Below are positions 41,882-54,861 of a DNA stretch of 64,000 nucleotides, piece by piece (within the stretch, counting starts at the first letter, position 1; each line of letters starts with the position of its first letter). The notes beneath the pieces were generated by a model. It was not told where the DNA came from and did no database searches. It was given only the letters and a program-made list of their open reading frames with translations. A program made the position numbers and the translations under genes. Source of the DNA: Oopsacas minuta (lineage: Eukaryota; Animalia; Porifera); contig JAKMXF010000133.1 in NCBI GenBank assembly GCA_024704765.1, positions 372,001 to 436,000 of the forward strand, read 5' to 3'.

Positions 41882-44731
41882 ATGGCTACATCGGCTTCAC
41901 TAACTCCAATACTATGTGAAGATGAAGTTGACTTAGACTCTCCTGGTTTTGAGTTGAATAGTATTCGATCTGTTTCTCTCTCCAGTAACACTACAATATC
42001 AGGTCTCCTCAGGAAAGCATCCAATTATAAGGTACACCATCAGGAACAAGCATATCGACAGCATCAATTGATGAAAACATCCTTCTATAAGCCCACACAC
42101 TGTCAGTCTTGTGGAGACATGATATGGGGGATTCACAAGCAGGGATTCAACTGTATGGTATGTAATTTCCGTTGTCACGAGCGTTGCAGAGAGTCAGTGG
42201 TTGTTCCCTGTCTCACCATGAAGCTAGCTGAGCTACGTAAGCCTAATAGTCACTGGTTCAAGTTAATTACACCAAACAAGCGAGTATACTGTAATGTATG
42301 TCGTCATAAGATTACAAGTTCTTGTTTACGCTGTGAAGTGTGTAAATACTATTCACATAGTCAATGCATGCATGAAGCTGTCCTTGACTGTCTTGATTCT
42401 TCTACTCATAACGAATACTCAGGATCTATGCTAGATACAAATCTTAATTCACACCATTGGGTAGAGGGTAATCTCCCTGCTAGTGCTAGATGTACCATAT
42501 GTGATAAATCGTGTGGACATCCAGATTGTCTAATGGATGTGAGATGTGTTAGATGTGGTATACTTGTACACACCTACTGTCTGCCTATAGTTAAAGCAGC
42601 CTGCAATATAGGCCTGCTCAAGAGCATGTTCCTCTCTCCTACAATAGTAACTGTAATGCTTAGAGGAGATGACGCTGTTACACCGATACAAGGGACTAAA
42701 ACAGAGAACAGGTTCTGTCCTAGTCATGAAGTTCCCCCGCTAATAGTGCCAGATGAAGGCTTAGACTCATTACATCTTGATGAGGGTGATACATTAGAGG
42801 CTTCGAGTATTTTTGAAGAAATTGCCTTACCAAATAGACTCATAAAAGTATGGGATTATACACGAGATGATAATCTTAGCGGTAAACAAAGTAAGACGAT
42901 TAAGATATACGAGAATCAGACCGCATCTGACGTAGTGAATATGGTACTTAAGAAGTTCAGATTATTTGGGTACCCTGCAAACTTCTATTTAGTTATCCCT
43001 GCTAGTCCAGAGGATCAGGTCCCAGAGGACGAAGTACTATCTCCTGAAGTACCGATATTCAGTATACCATCTCGCAGAGAGCACATAATAGTACATCTCA
43101 AATTTAAGAAAGACGAGGGGGAGACCTACGCACTCAAGATGTATACAAAGATTAAGTTGGCAGATGCCGAAACTGCAACTATATATATTAAACCAGGGAT
43201 GACAGTACAGACTGTTATAAAAGAGGCTGTCAAAGATTTCCATGTATTGACAGGTACCCTAGCTTTATGTGAGTGTTATATTGACAAGTATTTATGTCAG
43301 GGATCTATATTCCATTTGGAGAGATTGGAGAATGATGAGGATATCTGGGAAGTAACTGCGGAAGATAGGAGAAGTTGTTTTAACAGAGCCCGCTTCACTC
43401 GGTATTTCCTGAAAAAACATTTGAATGAAGAGTTCAATGTAGTTATTACTAATTTACCAGTTTCTAAGACAGAAGAAGAATACAAAGCTATGTTAATCTC
43501 CGAACAGCTACAGGATAAAGTTCAATTGGAAGCAATGATGGATATTCATGGTGTGGTAGTACTCAAATGTGACGGAGATAGGACAGTGGATGATTTATGT
43601 GTTGAGCTGTCTATAGCTAACCAAAAGCCTTGTACTTTAGTACTGCCTACTCTACAGACTACTTCTCTTAAGAATGATATCAAACCGTTGTTAGTGTTTG
43701 TGAATAGTCGCAGTGGAGGGGGGCAGGGTAAGGAGCTTATATCCGGTTTGAGGAGACATTTGAATCCTCATCAGATATTCGATCTCACTCACGGAGGTCC
43801 GTATCCCGGAATATTCACTTTCAGGAATTTCGAACAATTCCGAGTTCTAATTTGCGGGGGAGATGGTACCTATGGGTGGGTGCTTCAGGCGCTAGACGAG
43901 ACACAGACGTGGAGGAAGTGCGCCAAACCAGAATGCGCCCTCCTTCCTCTTGGTACTGGAAACGACCTGGCTAGGGCCTTCGGTTGGGGGGCAGGCTACT
44001 CTGGAGAGAAAGCAGTAGAAGTGTTGTGTAAAATGAACTCGTGTTATCCCATACAATTCGATAGATGGACAATGGTATTTGACAGCAGAAAGAATTCTAT
44101 AGGAGGTACTCTCATGGAGCAGAACAAACTAATTGTAATGAACAATTATTTCGGTATTGGAATTGATGCAGAGGTATCTCTAGCTTTTCACGAGGCTAGA
44201 GAGAAACATCCTGAAAAGTTTAGCAGTAGAATCTACAACAAATTCCAATACGCCAAATTGGGTGCTGAGTTAATGATTGAGAATCAGGCTTACAATTTAC
44301 GTAGAGACCTTGAGATCCAGGTCGATGGTGAGACGATAGATTTCCCCCCAAATATTGTAGGGATTGTCGTACTGAATATAAACAGCTGGGCTGCAGGGGG
44401 CGACGCTTGGGGATGTGCTACAGATCCAAAATTCCAAAACCAAGACATGGGAGACGGGAAATTAGAAGTTGCTGGGGTAACAGGCTCAATTCACATGGTA
44501 CAGATTCAAAAGGGACTGGGTCATGCGATCAGATTAGCACAGGGGGCTCATATTAAGCTCAGTACTAAAGTAGCATTTCCTGTACAAGTGGATGGCGAGC
44601 CTTGGAGACAACCAGCAGGACATATCGCCATATTCCCTCAGATGGAGAAATCTACTCTATTAATGCATGTACCGGAGAGGAGAACTCCTAAGATACAGAA
44701 GAGTGTTAGTGCTGATGTGTATATGGTATAG
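41882..44731 (+). CDS. DGKQ: Diacylglycerol kinase theta (three C1 domains, RA-like region, catalytic and accessory domains), intronless
   Basis: Three C1 fingers (HQLMK..C..C, HWFK..C..C, HHWVEGNLP..C..C); PLLVFVNSRSGG, CGGDGT, PLGTGNDL, MNNYFGIGIDA, QVDGEPW. Confidence 0.95.
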   Translation: MATSASLTPILCEDEVDLDSPGFELNSIRSVSLSSNTTISGLLRKASNYKVHHQEQAYRQHQLMKTSFYKPTHCQSCGDMIWGIHKQGFNCMVCNFRCHERCRESVVVPCLTMKLAELRKPNSHWFKLITPNKRVYCNVCRHKITSSCLRCEVCKYYSHSQCMHEAVLDCLDSSTHNEYSGSMLDTNLNSHHWVEGNLPASARCTICDKSCGHPDCLMDVRCVRCGILVHTYCLPIVKAACNIGLLKSMFLSPTIVTVMLRGDDAVTPIQGTKTENRFCPSHEVPPLIVPDEGLDSLHLDEGDTLEASSIFEEIALPNRLIKVWDYTRDDNLSGKQSKTIKIYENQTASDVVNMVLKKFRLFGYPANFYLVIPASPEDQVPEDEVLSPEVPIFSIPSRREHIIVHLKFKKDEGETYALKMYTKIKLADAETATIYIKPGMTVQTVIKEAVKDFHVLTGTLALCECYIDKYLCQGSIFHLERLENDEDIWEVTAEDRRSCFNRARFTRYFLKKHLNEEFNVVITNLPVSKTEEEYKAMLISEQLQDKVQLEAMMDIHGVVVLKCDGDRTVDDLCVELSIANQKPCTLVLPTLQTTSLKNDIKPLLVFVNSRSGGGQGKELISGLRRHLNPHQIFDLTHGGPYPGIFTFRNFEQFRVLICGGDGTYGWVLQALDETQTWRKCAKPECALLPLGTGNDLARAFGWGAGYSGEKAVEVLCKMNSCYPIQFDRWTMVFDSRKNSIGGTLMEQNKLIVMNNYFGIGIDAEVSLAFHEAREKHPEKFSSRIYNKFQYAKLGAELMIENQAYNLRRDLEIQVDGETIDFPPNIVGIVVLNINSWAAGGDAWGCATDPKFQNQDMGDGKLEVAGVTGSIHMVQIQKGLGHAIRLAQGAHIKLSTKVAFPVQVDGEPWRQPAGHIAIFPQMEKSTLLMHVPERRTPKIQKSVSADVYMV

Positions 44732-45268: not shown

Positions 45269-45619
45269 ATGTCATCTGTCAGAGATGTAAACAGAGCAGA
45301 CCTAGAGATGGAAGAAGTACCGGTTACCACAGCACCGTTACAAGCTGCTGCATTTCATTATAAAGCTTATTGTAAAGATATAAATGATACTTTTATCAAT
45401 TGTCGGTATTGGAAGAAAGATCCTAGAAAATGTCTGACTGAAGGGCATGAAGTTTCTAATTGTGCTATTAGATTCTTTAGCTTTGTGAAGACGAATTGTA
45501 ACGATCAATTCATTCCATTCTACAACTGTTTAGACAATGGTAACATGGAATACAAGAATTGTTTGAAGGAACGAAAATTATTTGATAATTGTATGAACGC
45601 AGCTACTAAACCTGAGTAA
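45269..45619 (+). CDS. NDUFA8: Complex I subunit NDUFA8 (quadruple CX9C), 116 aa
   Basis: LQAAAFHY..YC...N..F..CR..KKDPRKCL.EG..V..CA..FF..VK..C resembles human NDUFA8; 8 Cys. Confidence 0.92.
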   Translation: MSSVRDVNRADLEMEEVPVTTAPLQAAAFHYKAYCKDINDTFINCRYWKKDPRKCLTEGHEVSNCAIRFFSFVKTNCNDQFIPFYNCLDNGNMEYKNCLKERKLFDNCMNAATKPE

Positions 45620-45739
45620 TAATATATCTGATTATATCGCATTACTAATACTTATCACTTTATTATCTGTCATATTGTTTTTAGTATCCTTACCGGGCTA
45701 ATTCTGATATCATAATCAGTTACTTAGGGTAATACTAGA

Positions 45740-48700
45740 ATGGCTTGCTGTTTACGGAGATCACCTAGACACATACAGCTTATACGTGCTCTCTACCCAC
45801 AAGATCCTTTAGCTGATATTCCTCCTAACAATCTTGAGCAGTTCCTATTCTTCGCCACTACCAATCAAACTCATTTGGAGGATGCATCAGATTATCTAGC
45901 TTACAGGTTGAGACGTAAGCTGCATAAGGGTAGAGAAAGGAAGGTGGAGATAACTCTAAAGATAACCATCAGTCTGGTAGATAAAGTAGACCCCCCTCAA
46001 CTAGGAACTCTACTTGACTCACTCATGCAGATGATACAGGTATTATTTTGATAGAAATAGACACGTACAATTTTTAAATAAATCTGCTTAGGTATTATTG
46101 GAATCACCAGAAGTTAGATATCAGCTGGACGCTACTCGGTTATTCCTACACTATGCAGTCAGAGAGGAGCCTACTCCGTCTCACCACCGGAACTACCAGT
46201 TCCTGGTGGAGAGATTTGGTAGTTTGGCTGTGAGTGGAGAGGAGACACGAGTCGTGTCTGGACTCCAAGCTTTGAGAGGGATTATAAGGAAAACTTCTCA
46301 ATCAGATTTACAACCTTTGTTATGGCAGCAGTTATTTTTATCTCATCTCTTGAATGCGTTTCTGTTAAATTTATCACAGTCTCACTCTGTGGTAGGAACA
46401 GGACTAGGGAATAGCGGACAGGGGAAGGTCAAAGAAAGGAGACTTAGTTTGCATCGGTAAGTTCAGAATTCAATTAAAGAATCGTATATTTGCTATTATC
46501 CATGGTTTAAATTGTGAAGCAAAAGAGACAAAAAGTGTTTCCGCCCGGGCTCGAACCGGGGACCTTGAGTGTGTTAGACTCACGTGATAACCACTACACT
46601 ACAGAAACCTAATTTTAATTTTTCTCCAAAGTCTCTTTTGAAAGCACTTGAAATTATCATTCCTATAGACGCTCCTTGAATTTGAGTTTATTAATCACAG
46701 AGCCTACTGAGGACGGATCTTCTACTCTTTCCTTCTCTCTTGCTCAGACAGGACTCCAGGAACTGCTGGATTCAGCTCAGCAACAGTCTCTGGAGCTCTG
46801 TACAGAGTGTTTTACTGAGTACATAGATGGATGTGGTCCTGCTTGTGAGACAGACATGGAGTCTGTAGGTGCTGACCTTGATCCTATCTTCTCTTTCTTT
46901 ATAACTTCTGTGAAAGACCCTCTCCGCTACCTCGTATTGAAGGCTTATCTCAGGACTCTATCTTCTGCTAAAACTGTCCCAATTCAGCTCATTCAGGTAT
47001 GAAGTATCGTAATATTTACATTTAATAGATATCTCATTTGATGGTAGTGTCCTTCCTTTTTCAATTACGACTTTTAACAATATATAGCAAAGTCCCGTTA
47101 CAACGATTGATTCTTGATTCCCCATTCTGCGCGAATTTATTTCCTCCCCCTTACAACAAAATTCCGTTTATAAGGAATGAAATCGGAGTCCCGAGTACTT
47201 CGTTAGCACGAGAGTTTACTGTATTATTCACATCAACTTTTTGAAATATTCTAGCTATAAATGGCCATAATTTAGCTTGTATATGACTAGATATATGCTA
47301 GCTACAAACACTACCAACATATAAATATAGCAATTACCAACACCATATATATACCCAAATTTGTATATTATGTGATTTCTATAAGTATAGCAGGTAAGTA
47401 GCATTGCAGGATGGCATATAGCACACTGACTTCACGACAATATAGAACAAAACCACAGGAAATTCTATCATTTCTCCCTTCAGAGATGAAGAAGCCAAGA
47501 ATTAAAATGCTTCCTTCTAGAAGCACTTTTGATTCTCTATATATCCCAGTTATGACGTCACCAACTTTGCTCCCTCTTAATTCCGAGGCACACAGACATA
47601 TACAGCCTGTATCAGACTCTACAAATATGTTCAAACCTCTCTGCTTCAGTCCAGATACTCCTGCTTTAGAAATAGATCTACCTCAGAGAATTAAATTCTG
47701 TTGTATGCCAGCCTTCTCTATCAAGAGTCAATCATCTCCCAACAGATTAGAGAGAGATATGCATATTCAGCAGCTACAACCTGATCAGCCTAAACCTTAT
47801 GTACTGCATTCCAAATGCAGCTCTCTGTCTCTAGACAACATTAAGACACCCGGTTCTTCTAAATTTGATATGGAGCTTGAATTAGATTACATAAATGAGA
47901 GATCAATACTCCGTCTAGACTCTATTTCCCTTACTCTCCCTCCTTTACCTCCTCTATCTTCACATCCATGTACTCTACATCAATCCTCACTACTCACAGG
48001 TCACACTAATACAGTTAGAGGGTTCCTACTGAGAGGTCCTATTAATCTATCCCTGCTAGAAACCGCATTAAGCTCTACAGCTGATCAGCACACACTACTA
48101 TATGCTACCTTCTCTCTGAGGGACACACCCTCATTCCAACTTTCAGATGAACGGGGTCCACTCAGGGTGGAGCATGCTACTATTAGTGCCTGTAATCCTG
48201 ATGAATTACTTGAGTTAGGATTGTCTACCGACTTTTCACACCTTCTCTTCTCACAAAATGAAGCAACCCAGCCTCTTATAAAGGTGTGTCTGTACTCATT
48301 TGGTAGCAATGAGCATGTTGTGGTGATATCCTCTCCAGCTGTTGTATCTGATTTCTATTCAATCACTCTATTCACTAGACAATTCTGTTCTATTTATTGT
48401 CAGCTGATTAAGTCCGCCAAATCTTCGGTTAGGAAACCTCCTGCGAAATTTCACACTAATTCACCTCTACTTTCTAAAAAGAAAAACAAAGAATTGAGTG
48501 TTTTACCTACGAAACATTGTCCGATGAGAAGTGTATCTATCAGTACAAACAATACAAGATTCTCCCAAACAGCTGTTCATGAATCAATGCTCCTTAAATT
48601 CACACCTCTCCCTGACTGTATACAAGCATGGTATCGACAGCTGTTAATGTTTTCCTCCTCAGACAGACTCGTCTCTCAAGCTAGAGTCCCTCACTACTTC

Positions 48701-51376
48701 TCTAAAGAGGGAAAAAGCGCAGTAACAAAACCGCGATTACGCAGTGCAATGCAGAAGAGTGCTTCTGATAGAAAACCAGCTGACTTCCTGTCATTAGAGA
48801 TAGACAATGAAATGACATCATCATTCTTAGAACTGATGCAAGTACGAAGTTCACACGGTGTTCCTGGGAGAGATCAGCTGTTTGTCCTGTCCCTCACAGC
48901 GTACAGCTTGTTACTAGCTGTATATTTCCGCGGATTGAGTGAACACACATTAACTGCAGGTGTTGTTGAGAAAGAGGTAACTTCTTTTGCTAAGAAATCT
49001 CAGAGAGTTCCTCTACAAAGCTCACTTCTATTCAATCACGAAAAGATGCAACTCAAATCTGCCAAAAAGCGTCAGTCACTTGCTCGTTCAGAAGCTTGTA
49101 TATTCACGATAGGCCTGTCTAACTCGTGTCGGTATCTATGTAATCCCCTCCGTAATTTATTTGCTCCACTCACCTACTTGTCTTATTTCCGTGTCGACCT
49201 TAATGACTGTTATACATTCTATGATTTCTTGTTATCCATCGCAAAATCTCTCGCCTTCTCTCTCACATACAATCACATACCAATATATCACGTCAAAGAT
49301 GCTCTGGAAATGAAACACCCAGAGGTCCAGTTCTCATTTCTTGGTCATAACGAAATGGAACAGATTTATTCTCCAGAGGATCATTTCTGTTTGGGGGCAA
49401 GTCTAGGGGTACAGGATCATGGGGTCACAAAGTTAGGTCCTCATTGCTACATGTCTCCTCTAAATGGGAGGGGCGAAGAGAGGTGTGGATTGGAGATGAT
49501 CGCGTGGGAGGGCTCAGACTCTAGGAACCTGGGTGGGGGATTCAAGTTTGATCCAGCACGTATCAGTAAATCAGTAGTACAAGAACTGAGGACTAAACTA
49601 TCAGAGACGATTGAGTATGTCGTGGCTGACTTGGATATAACTATCCTAGAGCTTGTCAGACTACTCACGTAACTTATCGTATTCTATATCGAATTATGAC
49701 ATATTTATTTACTCGTATATTTGTATATAGATTTCAATACTATGTAATTATACGTCAAAACATATTCTAACTTCTAAATACAGATATATATTTTAGAATG
49801 TCCGTTATATTTATAGATTAAACTCCTGCATACAGCCTTACATGTTTCTGATGCAGCATCACTGGTTCCTTGTGTTTGGGAAATTCAAGATTCGGTTACC
49901 TCTCTCCTCAAACACTCTGTGTCTCGTGTCTCTACCTTAAAACAGAAGAGAAAAGTTGCGTTACGTGATGATGACAATGAATTTCTCTTGCAGGCAGTTC
50001 TTGTGGGTCTGTTGGAGAAATTGTGTGCTTGTGTAGCTGATTACCAGAAGAAAGAGACAGTAGTATATATTGTACAGAAACTACCTGAAAACTCAGCTAA
50101 TGAGGAATTCCAGCTTGCACTCGTGGAGTGTTTGTTGAAAATGTCAGCTGTTTGCAGGAAAATATCGAGGTTTGTATTATGACATATTGATTGCAATTAT
50201 TTAAAATTAGTTCCTAAATCAAAAGAATATTCTAGAACAACTTTAAGATATGATGTAATACATCTGTAAAAATATTTTAAAATAGTTTCTTTTTTCCTGG
50301 AATTTTCTAGAATAAAACCAATATTATATAAACTAAATAATTCTTCATAGAGCTAACAGTCTATCCAGCAACCTATTAGAAACACTAGTCAACCAATTCT
50401 CTTACCACTCAGCGGAAGTACAGATAGGACTACAGAAGATATTTCAAATATTCCTAGACCCGCTTCAGAACGCTGCAGACATAAGTCTAGATACAAACTG
50501 GAATACTCTCACTGAATTAGGTTTGAAAGCGAATAAGGCTTCCAAACAGGAAATTCAAATCTATAGACGACTCAAGGAGCATTTATACTGGAATTTGTAT
50601 GAGCTATGTAAATCATGTTCGAAACCCCGAATTGTGTACCCAGAGGTACACAGGACCCTGGCTATTCTGGGACTCAGTTTGGGGTTTGAGGTTGTACAGG
50701 AAGGGGTGTATCATTTTCTGATATCAATACAGGTTCTAGCGGAAGAAGACAAATCACTTAGTATGTTGATTATACACAATTTGCATTTTTTAATAAACAT
50801 TTGAAATATTTCTTTATAGATTCAGAAACACAGATTAATCTTCATAGCTTAGTTATTCTAACATTTCACTTCTTCTCTCGTTTGTCAGCTGATCCAGGAT
50901 TCATGGAGCACATCAAGGAGTTAATTTCTTTACGGTGGGGAAGCACACCATATTTGCTCCCAGAGAGAAATTTTGGAGTTGAGACTACCCCTAAACACCC
51001 TCCTATCCAATGTCCCTTATCACTTGAACTCCTGCTTAATCCTGTTAAAATAGGCATTAGTGCAGAGCGGATCACTAAACCGCGGAGAGTAAAGAGAAAC
51101 CTTACTCAGAATGAGAGTACTGACCTAGCTATAGAACCTTATCCCGCACATAGAGAACTGCTAGATTCTAAAACAGAAGATCCAATAAACTTCACAGACA
51201 TAAAGGAAGCATTGGATCCTTCACAAGGCGAGTATAGCTCTACATTTTCAGAGAGCGCATCAGGCAGAAAGCAGGCGTATCAGGTTAAGAATTCAACTTA
51301 TGAAGAACTCCTACTAGACAGTGAATCTACAGAGACAGGAGATTATAGAGCTTTTGTTAATGACGTATTAACTTGA
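45740..51376 (+). CDS. EFR3: EFR3 homolog (PI4KA complex scaffold), multi-exon: 45740-46039, 46092-46456, 46669-46996, 49817-~50160, ~50350-50760, ~50820-51376
   Basis: MACC..RH..LIRALYP.DP, YLAYRL, EEPTPSHHRNYQFLVERF, GLQALRGIIRKT, VADYQKKE resemble EFR3A/B; phases consistent for the first four exons. Confidence 0.88.
46536..46608 (-). tRNA. tRNA-Val (anticodon AAC)
   Basis: GTTTCTGTAGTGTAGTGGTTATCACG-TGAGT-CTAACAC-ACTCA-AGGTC-CCCGG-TTCGAGC-CCGGG-CGGAAACA folds as a cloverleaf; followed by a T6 Pol III terminator. Confidence 0.97.
47083..47223. mobile_element. pogo-like MITE (TACAGTAAAC.C.CG..AACG TIR) in the large EFR3 intron
   Basis: tatagcaaagtcccgttacaacga / ttcgttagcacgagagtttactgta degenerate inverted ends. 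Confidence 0.6.
47411..49672 (+). CDS. Stand-alone NRPS condensation-domain-like protein (catalytic His absent), intronless, same-strand nested in an EFR3 intron; 5' start uncertain
   Basis: FLLRGPINLSLLETAL..TADQHTLLYATF, LIKVCLY....EHVVVI, PAVVSDFYS (HHxxxDGWS position), LFVLSLTAYSLLL, IGLSN..R...NLFAP...YFRVDL..TF.DFL, HIPIYHV..AL, GGFKFDP..IS..VVQEL..L..VVAD follow the C-domain consensus in order. Confidence 0.8.
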   Translation: MAYSTLTSRQYRTKPQEILSFLPSEMKKPRIKMLPSRSTFDSLYIPVMTSPTLLPLNSEAHRHIQPVSDSTNMFKPLCFSPDTPALEIDLPQRIKFCCMPAFSIKSQSSPNRLERDMHIQQLQPDQPKPYVLHSKCSSLSLDNIKTPGSSKFDMELELDYINERSILRLDSISLTLPPLPPLSSHPCTLHQSSLLTGHTNTVRGFLLRGPINLSLLETALSSTADQHTLLYATFSLRDTPSFQLSDERGPLRVEHATISACNPDELLELGLSTDFSHLLFSQNEATQPLIKVCLYSFGSNEHVVVISSPAVVSDFYSITLFTRQFCSIYCQLIKSAKSSVRKPPAKFHTNSPLLSKKKNKELSVLPTKHCPMRSVSISTNNTRFSQTAVHESMLLKFTPLPDCIQAWYRQLLMFSSSDRLVSQARVPHYFSKEGKSAVTKPRLRSAMQKSASDRKPADFLSLEIDNEMTSSFLELMQVRSSHGVPGRDQLFVLSLTAYSLLLAVYFRGLSEHTLTAGVVEKEVTSFAKKSQRVPLQSSLLFNHEKMQLKSAKKRQSLARSEACIFTIGLSNSCRYLCNPLRNLFAPLTYLSYFRVDLNDCYTFYDFLLSIAKSLAFSLTYNHIPIYHVKDALEMKHPEVQFSFLGHNEMEQIYSPEDHFCLGASLGVQDHGVTKLGPHCYMSPLNGRGEERCGLEMIAWEGSDSRNLGGGFKFDPARISKSVVQELRTKLSETIEYVVADLDITILELVRLLT

Positions 51377-51637
51377 GATTGATAGATGTCAGTGAATGCT
51401 ATAGTATGGTTTGTTTGTTCACATATTGCTTGCATGGTGTAAATATATCAATCCCGACATGATTGCTCTAAAATACCTGTCTATACATTTATTAAATACT
51501 ATACCTAATTCTCACTCAATGCTCCAGAAGCGTAGCAAGCTCATGAAACCGGGGGCCTGATCATTGTCATCTAATATACGTAATTTTATATATTAACACT
51601 CTTGCTTCTTTATTAATTCAGCTTTTAATTATTGCAA

Positions 51638-52450
51638 ATGAGATCCTTAACGATTTTCTCTTTCCTTCTACTTATCGCTATCAACTCAGCTCAATTTGTA
51701 CGGTTTTCCTTACCAGAAAGCTCGATTACATATTTTATTTGTCAACTTCATGCTCCTTCTGGGCTGAATTTTTCCGCAACAGTTCCTTCTCTCAGTCTTA
51801 ATAGTAATGACAATTATTTTTATTTTGACGAAGTGGATGATCATCTCGATCCTTTGAGATATCATGGTTATCATATTCCTGATTTCTCTCTTGAAATGTT
51901 ATCAGGTTTTATTCAAGTTATGAATTTCCAAGATGAAGATTTTGAAAATATTTCCTGTTTCCAATATCTTAATGATGACACTCTGATGCAACATCACTTA
52001 TCAATGAATTATTTATTGCAACCCGGCGAACTTACTACCACAACCCCTGTTGTTCATCCTTCAGATAACCTACCCACAACACAATTACCGATATCCTACA
52101 TGCCACCAACTTCTATGACTAATAATATTCCAGAATCACAAATTTGGAAATATCTCGCTATTTCCTTAGCTGTCATTTTGATACTCTTTCTTTGCTGTTG
52201 TGTGGTACGAGGTTGTATAGCACTACTGTTAATTTTCTCTTATTTTATCAGTATTTTGAGACATAATTCATGTAGTTATGACGCTCGTAATGATGGCAGT
52301 ATTGCTCCATCACTGATTGAAAGCAAAATACTCGTTGATACTGCTGAACATGTGCATGTCGAACTTGGAGATATAAATCCACTTACAAATTCTCATGATC
52401 CTGATTTTCATCCTGACGATAGGCAGGAAGATGAATCCAATCAAACATAG
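51638..52450 (+). CDS. Single-pass receptor: signal peptide, Ig-like domain, T/P stalk, TM; intronless
   Basis: Signal peptide MRSLTIFSFLLLIAINSA; two Cys about 72 aa apart; TM LAISLAVILILFLCCC. Confidence 0.7.
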   Translation: MRSLTIFSFLLLIAINSAQFVRFSLPESSITYFICQLHAPSGLNFSATVPSLSLNSNDNYFYFDEVDDHLDPLRYHGYHIPDFSLEMLSGFIQVMNFQDEDFENISCFQYLNDDTLMQHHLSMNYLLQPGELTTTTPVVHPSDNLPTTQLPISYMPPTSMTNNIPESQIWKYLAISLAVILILFLCCCVVRGCIALLLIFSYFISILRHNSCSYDARNDGSIAPSLIESKILVDTAEHVHVELGDINPLTNSHDPDFHPDDRQEDESNQT

Positions 52451-52695: not shown

Positions 52696-53388
52696 ATGCT
52701 CGCTACATATTTCTTGATAATTCTGTCTATCTCCATAATTTCTGGAAAATTCCTTTCATACCCGAATAATCCATCTATTGGCGATACGGTTGTCTTAAAA
52801 TGTATGCTTAATGCTCCGGAAGGGATGATGTTCGCATCTATAGCTCCCAAATTGAAGATAAACAATTCAGGTTATCCAATCTCATTTGACAAGATAACTG
52901 AGAATCTTGACAATGATAGGTACTATGGGCTGCATCTACCAGATGAAGATCGTAGCCGTCTCAGAGGAGATATTACTATTTTCTTTATAAAAGAAACTGA
53001 TTTATACACAAATTTTACTTGTCTTGCACAATTAAACAATGACTCATTCATTGAATTAATGCTCAACATATCACAATCTGACTCAGAGCAATCTATTCCT
53101 AACTCTCCACCTACTAATACAACGTCAAATTGTACTACAGAAGAAGATGCAATTTTGAAAATTATTACTGGCTTACTTTCATTCGTGTTTTCGATAAAAT
53201 TTTCTATTTTTGGGGTGATTATATTTTGTGTAATCTGTTATCTCGCCAAAAGATATTACCCCAAAAGAACTGTTGTTCCAGAGGTAATACAAGATACAAA
53301 ATTGAAGCCTGGAAAAGAGACAGAGGATGTAGTTCTTACGAAATTCAAACCAGTTGATGGCAATGCCACACACGAAGAGGTGCAATAG
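52696..53388 (+). CDS. Single-pass Ig-like receptor, tandem paralog of 51638-52450
   Basis: Shared C.L.AP.G..F, LD..RY.G.H.PD, L.G.I and C...LN[DN] motifs; TM region then cytoplasmic tail. Confidence 0.7.
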   Translation: MLATYFLIILSISIISGKFLSYPNNPSIGDTVVLKCMLNAPEGMMFASIAPKLKINNSGYPISFDKITENLDNDRYYGLHLPDEDRSRLRGDITIFFIKETDLYTNFTCLAQLNNDSFIELMLNISQSDSEQSIPNSPPTNTTSNCTTEEDAILKIITGLLSFVFSIKFSIFGVIIFCVICYLAKRYYPKRTVVPEVIQDTKLKPGKETEDVVLTKFKPVDGNATHEEVQ

Positions 53389-53790
53389 TTTAAGTTCAAA
53401 CAACTCAGTCACTTTTTAGGTATTAAATGTTTCATTTGTTAATTTTGTTATTTCACTTCACTTCATTTCCGCATTATTGCTTAATTATTAGTTGAGAATT
53501 TGCATGCAGAATTATTAATATTTTCATACACAATAATCTAGTATGCTGTAATTTAATTGTAATTAATTCGTTGAGGTAAATAGCACACAAGCATCAAGCA
53601 GACAATAAGCCACGTGTCTATTCAATTACATTTATTTCTACATACAATAATTACATAGAAATGTTACTCAATGGTAGCTTTATTACACACTCAATGCACA
53701 TGATTCACCCTAAGGTCAAATTCAACTCTTATATAATGAACAAAATTGTAATGTATATATAATTTATACAAATATTATTACATATAAGTG

Positions 53791-54861
53791 ATGGCTGACT
53801 TATCTGATCCCTCTGAGATCCGTGTCTACACGGATGGATGCTATGACCTTGTACACTATGGACACGCTAACTCCCTTAGACAGGCAAAACAGCTGGGAAC
53901 ATACCTCGTGTCGGGTGCACACTCTGAGGAACAGATTAAATTTCACAAGGGTCCTCCCCTCTCCAAAGAGGTAGAGAGGTTCGATCAGCTGCGAGCCATC
54001 CGCTGGGTTAACGAGGTAATGGAGAGAGCTCCATACCAAATAACTCCTGAGGTTTTAGACAAGATAAACTGTAAATTTACAGTCCATGGCAATGACATAT
54101 CTCCTCTCGCAGGGGGAGCAGACTGTTACTCTATCGTTAAAGATGCAAAACGCTACAGAGAAGTACAGCGGACCGAAGGGGTATCTACCACAGAATTGGT
54201 TGAGCGTCTGCTACAAGAGAGTAAGGCTCATCACCTCGCTTCTTTCAATGGAGAGGATATTGACGTCAACAATTGGAAATGGGTACCAGAGTTGTGTACG
54301 GACGCTAATGCAATAGATCCTTGTGTAGAAGTATTCTACTATCGGTCTGCTGGTTTAAAGAAGGTTATCAGTGGTATTGGTCCTAAGCCTGGTCAAAAGA
54401 TTTGCTATACGTACGGATCATTTGATTTATTCCATCACGGTCATGTACAATTTCTGAAGAAAGCACATCAACTGGGAGATTATGTAATTGTAGGTATACT
54501 CAATGACCAGACGGTTAATTCGTATAAAGGGGGGAGCTATCCTATTTTGAATATATTAGAGCGTCTCCGCAGTCTGGTATCTTGTCGTTATGTGGATGCT
54601 GCAGTAATTGATGTACCATACAAACTGAATGGAGATATTCTAGACTTTTTCAAACCAGACGTTGTGGTGCATGGAGTAAACCTCTCGGAAGATTTCTTAG
54701 AAAAAGACCCGTACCAGTTAGCAAAAGACCGCGGTATTCTCAAAATCTTATCATCAGGCTCAACACTTACTTCCACTGATCTGATGGCAAGAATTGTAGA
54801 AAATCGTGTTGCTTATGTAGAGCGGAATAAAAGGAAACTGAAGAAGGGAGATGCTAAATAG
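53791..54861 (+). CDS. PCYT2: Ethanolamine-phosphate cytidylyltransferase (two cytidylyltransferase domains), intronless
   Basis: DGCYDLVHYGH, HKGPP, RTEGVSTT; second domain GSFDLFHHGH, YKGGSYPILN..ER. Confidence 0.95.
   Translation: MADLSDPSEIRVYTDGCYDLVHYGHANSLRQAKQLGTYLVSGAHSEEQIKFHKGPPLSKEVERFDQLRAIRWVNEVMERAPYQITPEVLDKINCKFTVHGNDISPLAGGADCYSIVKDAKRYREVQRTEGVSTTELVERLLQESKAHHLASFNGEDIDVNNWKWVPELCTDANAIDPCVEVFYYRSAGLKKVISGIGPKPGQKICYTYGSFDLFHHGHVQFLKKAHQLGDYVIVGILNDQTVNSYKGGSYPILNILERLRSLVSCRYVDAAVIDVPYKLNGDILDFFKPDVVVHGVNLSEDFLEKDPYQLAKDRGILKILSSGSTLTSTDLMARIVENRVAYVERNKRKLKKGDAK

Follow-up and report, generated by a model that had tools for sequence, protein, structure and literature searches.

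Non-ribosomal peptide synthesis relies on condensation (C) domains as its core catalysts; these are regarded as bacterial and fungal, while the peptides found in sponges are usually credited to symbionts. What, then, does a C-domain-like gene represent when it is met in the genome of a glass sponge? The question is posed by a stretch of 64,000 nt from Oopsacas minuta (GenBank assembly GCA_024704765.1, contig JAKMXF010000133.1, positions 372,001 to 436,000; hereafter 'the window', with positions counted from its first letter), in which an open reading frame (ORF) on the forward strand (47411-49672) encodes a protein of 753 amino acids (aa). A sequence-only reading of the window had seen in this ORF a complete, two-lobed, stand-alone C-domain-like sequence whose catalytic His was lost, and had suggested that it was an old horizontal acquisition or relic, domesticated as a non-catalytic or re-purposed acyl-binding protein. 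On the strength of sequence comparison and structural modelling we consider that the protein is a complete two-lobed homologue of the C domains of non-ribosomal peptide synthetases (NRPSs), stand-alone and animal-encoded, which is retained under purifying selection and which probably acts as a pseudoenzyme.

Homology to condensation domains

Searches with the single sequence recognised the first lobe of a C domain. Pfam Condensation (PF00668) matched residues 198-339 on profile positions 26-168 (E 2.3e-6) with 27.0 bits, under the curated threshold of 30.6, and a weak NRPS match from NCBIfam fell on these residues as well. Along the 753-aa protein, Pfam and NCBIfam returned nothing beyond Condensation/NRPS, and no adenylation, carrier or thioesterase domain was found in cis. 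As a check against the Condensation family (one of those put forward by the sequence-only reading) the single-sequence score thus fell short of the cut-off, and the family was recovered by the profile-based comparisons. A seven-orthologue profile (alignment A1) matched in the PDB only C and X domains of NRPSs (Txo1, E 1.4e-4; DhbF; Txo2; TycB; the teicoplanin X-domain 4tx2, E 0.069; VibH). The exhaustive family-profile search, covering 1.84 billion representatives, gave 5340 matches at E<=1e-3 (843 of them at E<=1e-10), almost all of which were multi-modular NRPSs and all of which lay on profile positions of about 205-345, in a ranking that is biased toward giant NRPSs with multiple C domains; individual bacterial C domains reached up to 44.6 bits against the family profile.

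As single-sequence searches detect the N lobe only, the second lobe rests on hhalign and on a model built with AlphaFold2 (AF2). Comparison by hhalign with 19 canonical C domains (alignment A2) returned a probability of 97.6 % (E 2.8e-12) over 405 columns (query 213-762 versus template 28-440 of 473), spanning both lobes and pairing LFAPLTYLSYFRVDL with the C5 motif (IGFFVNTLvLRxDL), YNHIPI with C6 (HQDxPF) and PEVQFSFL with C7 (PLFQVMF). The AF2 model, obtained from a 60-row alignment (A3: the orthologues, the Sycon and Corticium-like relatives described below, the latter as pieces, and 50 canonical C domains), had a predicted local distance difference test (pLDDT) of 76.6 and a predicted template-modelling score (pTM) of 0.80, and presents a predicted two-lobed, pseudo-dimeric fold of about 450 residues resembling that of chloramphenicol acetyltransferase (CAT). 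C domains matched the model over its residues 1-568, both in Foldseek (E down to 4.6e-21, target-normalised template-modelling score 0.66-0.72) and in VIA-align (Z 28-30 over 400-416 residues, with the X-domains 4tx2 and 6m7l in the top rows). The rows returned from the ESM Atlas were all Condensation, and in an ESM-feature (protein-language-model) search 30/30 matches were Condensation clusters (score 0.98). Since the alignment behind the model itself contained C domains, the fold match and the sequence homology are not independent of each other, and we take the former as compatibility with a C domain and not as separate proof. The complete, two-lobed and stand-alone character proposed beforehand was in this way borne out at exactly the same coordinates, by Pfam for the N lobe and by hhalign together with AF2 for both.

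The former active site and protein architecture

HMMER residue alignments with the C domains of Txo2, Txo1 and DhbF place PAVVSDF (residues 309-315) on the catalytic motif HHxxxDG: the first His is replaced by P309, the second by A310 and the Gly by F315, and the Asp is kept (D314). All of 50 canonical C domains have His at the position of P309, and its loss in the sponge protein agrees with what the sequence-only reading had noticed. Besides both catalytic His and the motif Gly, the C2 Arg is replaced and the C6 Asp has become H622. Retained throughout glass sponges, Sycon and the Corticium-like relative are core structural residues (Q191, G209, F234, P288, H302, D314, S317, Y329, W407, R574 and P624), and to these are added family-specific invariants, namely H622, C679-Y680-x-x-P683 (within an insertion missing from canonical domains), C692 and W699-E700.

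The lobes are preceded by an extension of 185 residues in which Ser, Pro and Thr together make up 32 %; it is probably disordered, belongs to no Pfam family and has no detectable similarity to the N terminus of the Sycon protein. Both this S/P-rich extension and the basic insertion (residues 335-385) had been pointed out from the sequence and were found again (Table 1). The insertion corresponds to a gap in hhalign and to a region of the model with pLDDT <50, and two more basic stretches occupy residues 414-460 and 514-563. The protein lacks both a signal peptide and a transmembrane segment (the sole sufficiently hydrophobic 19-residue window is the core beta-strand of motif C3), and is probably cytosolic.

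Purifying selection

The gene is under purifying selection. In comparison with the glass-sponge assembly L001, non-synonymous divergence (dN) is 0.135 and synonymous divergence (dS) 1.22, giving a dN/dS of about 0.11, and the dN is comparable to that of the neighbouring DGK gene in the same comparison (0.139). Every segment is constrained, including the N-terminal arm (proportion of non-synonymous differences, pN, 0.14; of synonymous ones, pS, 0.68), the loosest being that of the basic insertion (residues 336-400, pN 0.29). With respect to a close relative in run X5 (about 4 % divergent), the 37 differences listed, a rough and partial list, comprise 22 synonymous and 15 non-synonymous ones. 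The 753-codon frame is intact, from identical start to identical stop, in seven glass-sponge assemblies, and six orthologues (P0001-P0006, 58-80 % identity) align from Met1 to the last residue (A1).

A sponge-wide family

Sequence comparison further indicates that the family occurs in Hexactinellida, Calcarea and Homoscleromorpha and that it is an old sponge protein family. At the HHxxxDG position the glass sponges (the window and P0001-P0006) read SSPAVVSDFYS, Sycon ciliatum (Calcarea; P0008/L004) reads SSPSFVSDYWS, a Corticium-like homoscleromorph (contigs L005 and L006) TFPRIVCDF(Y/W)S, and the metagenome scaffold L007 TFPRIVADYWS. Pro therefore stands at the first His in all family lineages, and the second is replaced by A, S or R, depending on the lineage. 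As the Pro at the first His is common to glass sponges, Calcarea, the Corticium-like sponge and L007, catalysis would have been lost before these classes split. The family signature, consisting of xPxxVxD[FY][YW]S and of the C-lobe patterns G..CY.xP and C..LE...WE......GGF[KR][FY].P, does not vary between glass sponges, Sycon and the Corticium-like relative, and xPxxVxD[FY][YW]S is also carried by L007.

The Sycon protein (XP_065187147.1, uncharacterized protein LOC135817807; 23 % identity over 517 aa, E 8e-27) is 1121 aa long and encoded by a multi-exon gene of 9 kb, which adjoins a RabGAP-TBC gene on a 39-Mb chromosome; in the exhaustive profile search it was the only non-NRPS match with an alignment in the C lobe. 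This relative (OZ025896.1, L004 8001-17167) has an acidic low-complexity N terminus of roughly 300 aa and an insertion of roughly 200 aa between C2 and C3. The Corticium-like fragments (cluster P0094/P0159) are located on contig L005 and on the 1.3-Mb contig L006, and their C lobe is 46 % identical to that of Sycon; the label 'Corticium-like homoscleromorph' rests on the neighbouring Pirin gene, which clusters at an identity of at least 90 % with Corticium candelabrum proteins. A long simple repeat of the (GTCT/GTCTGTCT)n type in the downstream intron/exon region of L006 (8688-9130) breaks the ORF of the last conserved exon.

The exhaustive search returned no further relatives with a C-lobe match at E<1e-17, weaker ones being such as would sit hidden under NRPS matches. 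A word-based search with the Sycon C lobe recovered only the query itself, and JGI metagenome contigs scanned with two C-lobe patterns yielded 194 pattern matches and 0 relatives. Orthologues exist across sponges; as for an already known animal family, none emerged, all members being unnamed or 'uncharacterized'.

Proposed function

We favour, as the probable reading, that the protein is a pseudoenzyme in which the C-domain shell would serve as a non-catalytic binding or scaffold module, by analogy with X-domains. Onto this shell a protein partner would dock, or else it would bind a ligand such as pantetheine, an acyl group or a carrier protein; motifs for regulation or targeting would reside in the disordered N-terminal arm and in the basic loops. 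Several points have to be set on the other side of the balance. The Pfam Condensation score lies below the curated threshold and concerns the N lobe only, and AF2 failed when given the seven orthologues alone (pLDDT 29), a good model having required the 50 canonical C domains. The binding role is drawn from analogy only. Moreover, not all C domains depend strictly on the catalytic His (VibH is reported to tolerate its mutation), and the loss of both His is therefore no proof of a total loss of activity.

The protein might accordingly still be an enzyme, i.e. an acyl- or ester-transferase with a non-canonical active site (D314, H622 or C679/C692) which would use thioesters of CoA or of carrier proteins. 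Such an activity would be in keeping with the strong constraint on the whole domain (surroundings of the former active site included) and with the invariance of the family-specific H622, C679 and C692 as possible new functional residues, and other members of the C superfamily do function with altered motifs (e.g. Cy domains, with DxxxxD). We nonetheless judge it somewhat unlikely, given that both His, the Gly and the C2 Arg are all replaced, that the second His position is A, S or R according to the lineage (unexpected for a catalytic residue) and that neither a carrier nor an adenylation domain is present in cis.

A more specific version of the pseudoenzyme reading, which we consider quite unlikely, would see in the protein the animal equivalent of an X-domain, in which a dead C domain on a polypeptide of its own docks onto carrier-protein-dependent machinery in trans (e.g. 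the fatty-acid or mitochondrial acyl carrier protein) and gates or chaperones it. If this were true, the family would belong to the ancestral equipment of sponges for a natural-product or lipid metabolism encoded by the host.

That the gene is a decaying, functionless relic of an old horizontal transfer could be read from its destroyed catalytic motif, its large low-complexity insertions and its sub-threshold Pfam score. The intact 753-codon frame in seven glass-sponge assemblies, the dN/dS of 0.11 with a dN equal to that of a housekeeping neighbour, the transcription and trans-splicing of the gene (see below) and the orthologues in three sponge classes make this highly improbable. Of the two terms offered by the sequence-only reading, 'domesticated' consequently holds (the gene is expressed and under purifying selection), and 'relic' has to be given up.

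A gene within an intron of EFR3

The gene is flanked, on its own strand, by ORFs that represent the exons of an EFR3-like gene, the first of which reached 31.9 bits against Pfam EFR3_ARM (cut-off 27.6) when the exons were searched singly. The RNA evidence consists of assembled Logan contigs of run X4, which show presence and joints and not expression levels. They contain four joints (46037>46090, 46455>46668, 46994>49815 and 50760>50820), all of them GT..AG. The third connects EFR3 exon 3 (end 46996) to exon 4 (start 49817) and skips the entire ORF, which therefore lies inside EFR3 intron 3, with 394 nt ahead of the acceptor of the nested gene and 144 nt past its stop. The ORF itself is covered continuously by X4 contigs with no internal joint. 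The contig that starts at 47389 is preceded by foreign letters, AAAAAACTTAC, and the contig at the 5' end of EFR3 (45726) by TCTTCATAAAAAAACTTAC, which has the same leader end; because the genome has AG at both junctions (45726 and 47389), the leader probably either ends in ...CTTACAG or joins directly after the genomic AG.

The nested gene is, in sum, an independent, expressed, intronless, sense-strand gene in EFR3 intron 3, with one and the same spliced leader on its mRNA and on that of its host. A trans-spliced leader has been reported in the glass sponge Aphrocallistes vastus (PMC10282587); no copy coding for the leader was found in the window. The arrangement is shared: nesting between EFR3 exons 3 and 4 was also found in three other glass-sponge assemblies (L001, L002 and L003), where the wider order DGK, NDUFA8-like, EFR3, ..., PCYT2 is kept as well. 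Outside the glass sponges the gene lies outside EFR3, with RabGAP-TBC (Sycon) or ZIP and Pirin (Corticium-like) as neighbours.

If the nested gene lacks its own promoter, any one pre-mRNA could undergo either trans-splicing at 47390 or the cis-splicing of intron 3, but not both. Its 3' untranslated region (UTR) and poly(A) signal are confined to 144 nt (49673-49816), and the contigs listed contain no poly(A) end.

Its position on the EFR3 strand, with acceptor-like sites just ahead of the ATG (exon start 47391 or 47410), would also suit an exon or alternative last exon of EFR3 that gives rise to an EFR3-C-domain fusion. We ruled this out as scarcely credible: the sole joint seen from exon 3 bypasses the ORF, cis-splicing of the phase-0 exon 3 to either candidate acceptor results in a frame mismatch with the nested ORF, the transcript start bears the spliced leader, and the Sycon and Corticium-like genes are found away from EFR3. 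The mis-assembly of bacterial or symbiont DNA into the sponge contig, which the exclusively bacterial NRPS C domains among the detectable non-sponge relatives might bring to mind and which the sequence-only reading had already thought unlikely, is next to inconceivable for a gene that is surrounded by a spliced animal intron, bears a spliced leader on its RNA, keeps the same synteny in four assemblies, has a GC content (0.39-0.41) similar to that of its neighbours and possesses a multi-exon orthologue on a Sycon chromosome.

Table 1. Positions in the window of the nested gene, the parts of its protein and the host gene
Feature	Position	Strand	Description and evidence
Pseudo-condensation-domain protein, coding sequence	47411..49672	+	Intronless; 753 aa + stop; conservation from Met1 to end in 6 orthologues, RNA cover, dN/dS
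N-terminal extension, residues 1-185	47411..47965	+	S/P/T-rich; short motifs invariant among glass sponges
C-domain N lobe, residues 186-334	47966..48412	+	C1 PCTLHQSSLL and C2 QHTLLYATF recognisable; C3 degenerate
Former catalytic motif (HHxxxDG = P-A-V-V-S-D-F)	48335..48355	+	HMMER residue alignments
Basic insertion, residues 335-385	48413..48565	+	22 % K+R, isoelectric point 11.2; absent from canonical C domains; fastest-evolving part
C4 region, lobe crossover and C lobe, residues 386-753	48566..49669	+	Remnants of C5 (LFAPLTYLSYFRVDL), C6 (YNHIPIY) and C7 (PEVQFSFL); basic insertion 514-563
Trans-splice acceptor AG (47389-47390) and 20-nt 5' UTR	47389..47410	+	Start of X4 RNA contig with foreign leader
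EFR3 intron 3, with the whole nested gene inside	46997..49816	+	GT..AG joint 46994>49815 (cut +2), X4 RNA contigs
EFR3-like host gene	45728..51376 (stop at 51376)	+	Exons about 45728-46039, 46092-46456, 46669-46996, 49817-...

Ahead of the nested gene, intron 3 contains a short high-copy repeat (47188-47227), whose depth was 2-3x in DNA runs and reached about 50x in the organism B run; many contigs break on both its flanks, and it is present as a single copy in the window, with no Rfam match. Rfam families were found neither in intron 3 nor in the ORF, and the repeat structure within the intron showed nothing notable except one weak inverted pair. The neighbourhood includes single-exon genes for DGK (41882-44731, 949 aa, with C1, RA and kinase domains), an NDUFA8-like CX9C protein (45269-45619) and a PCYT2-like cytidylyltransferase (53788-54861, 357 aa). 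Two adjacent ORFs (51632-52450, 272 aa; 52696-53388, 230 aa) appear to encode paralogous single-pass membrane proteins, with signal-like N termini, similar ectodomains and the common patterns 'N.S...P.L..N' and 'RY.G.H.PD'.

Origin and significance

Judged by its distribution, the family would date back at least as far as the last ancestor that the three sponge classes have in common. The best-scoring C domains came from Binatia, Gammaproteobacteria, Chloroflexota and Actinomycetota, at an identity of 15-20 % and with no donor signal. The family may have entered the sponge stem by horizontal transfer or may derive from an NRPS of ancestral animals; the old horizontal acquisition of the sequence-only reading is thereby kept as one possibility, the nearest C domains being bacterial, scattered over phyla and with no identifiable donor.

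A literature search found no paper describing this sponge family and none pairing 'condensation domain' with 'pseudoenzyme', and two glass-sponge genome papers (one of them PMC10282587) make no mention of condensation or nonribosomal genes. We have here a host-encoded C-domain family in three sponge classes, which lost its catalytic His before their split and has since been kept under selection, and which may be among the oldest documented cases in animals of an NRPS domain turned pseudoenzyme. It offers a testable handle on the uses of a bare C-domain shell and on whether sponges themselves run carrier-protein-based chemistry. The locus also provides an RNA-supported case of a same-strand gene in an intron, with the spliced leader on host and guest alike.

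Comparison with known systems

With the C domains of NRPSs (PF00668; Txo2 6p1j, SrfA-C 2vsq/8f7f, TycC 2jgp) the sponge protein shares homology in both lobes, the same predicted fold and remnants of motifs C1-C7. It differs from them in being stand-alone, without adenylation (A), peptidyl carrier protein (PCP) and thioesterase (TE) domains, in reading PAVVSDF and in having the C2 Arg and C6 Asp replaced, and it adds three basic insertions, a Cys-containing insertion and the 185-aa N-terminal arm, at an identity of 15-20 %.

The X-domain (4tx2, 4tx3, 6m7l) also combines a C-type fold with a degenerate motif (Foldseek rank 2, VIA-align Z 28.8); it is no longer catalytic and is used for docking. 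Its motif is HRxxxDD, degenerate at the second His, and an Arg at this position is likewise found in the Corticium-like and L007 relatives (PRxxxD). The X-domain, however, is part of the terminal module of an NRPS and has its first His intact, whereas the sponge protein is free-standing and has Pro in its place. According to the PDB titles of 4tx3 and 6m7l, the X-domain binds P450 enzymes in glycopeptide NRPSs. By analogy, the sponge protein may be X-domain-like in its working, but it would not be a member of the X-domain family.

Closest in format are the free-standing C enzymes VibH (1l5a), SgcC5 (4znm) and CmnI (9uay), which are also single C domains on separate polypeptides and which appeared among the sequence or structure matches. 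As far as is known, they keep HHxxxDG, are active and use bacterial carrier proteins, whereas the sponge family is without the motif.

Animals are known to encode NRPS and NRPS-like genes of their own (the NRPSs of nematodes, rotifers, molluscs and amphioxus; Ebony; ACSF4-U26), and it is debated whether these arose by transfer or go back to ancient descent (PMC10531068). The 2023 survey 'Nonribosomal Peptide Synthetases in Animals' covers seven phyla, sponges not being mentioned (PMC10531068). These genes encode multi-domain enzymes with adenylation domains, in contrast to which the sponge family would be a lone, inactive C domain.

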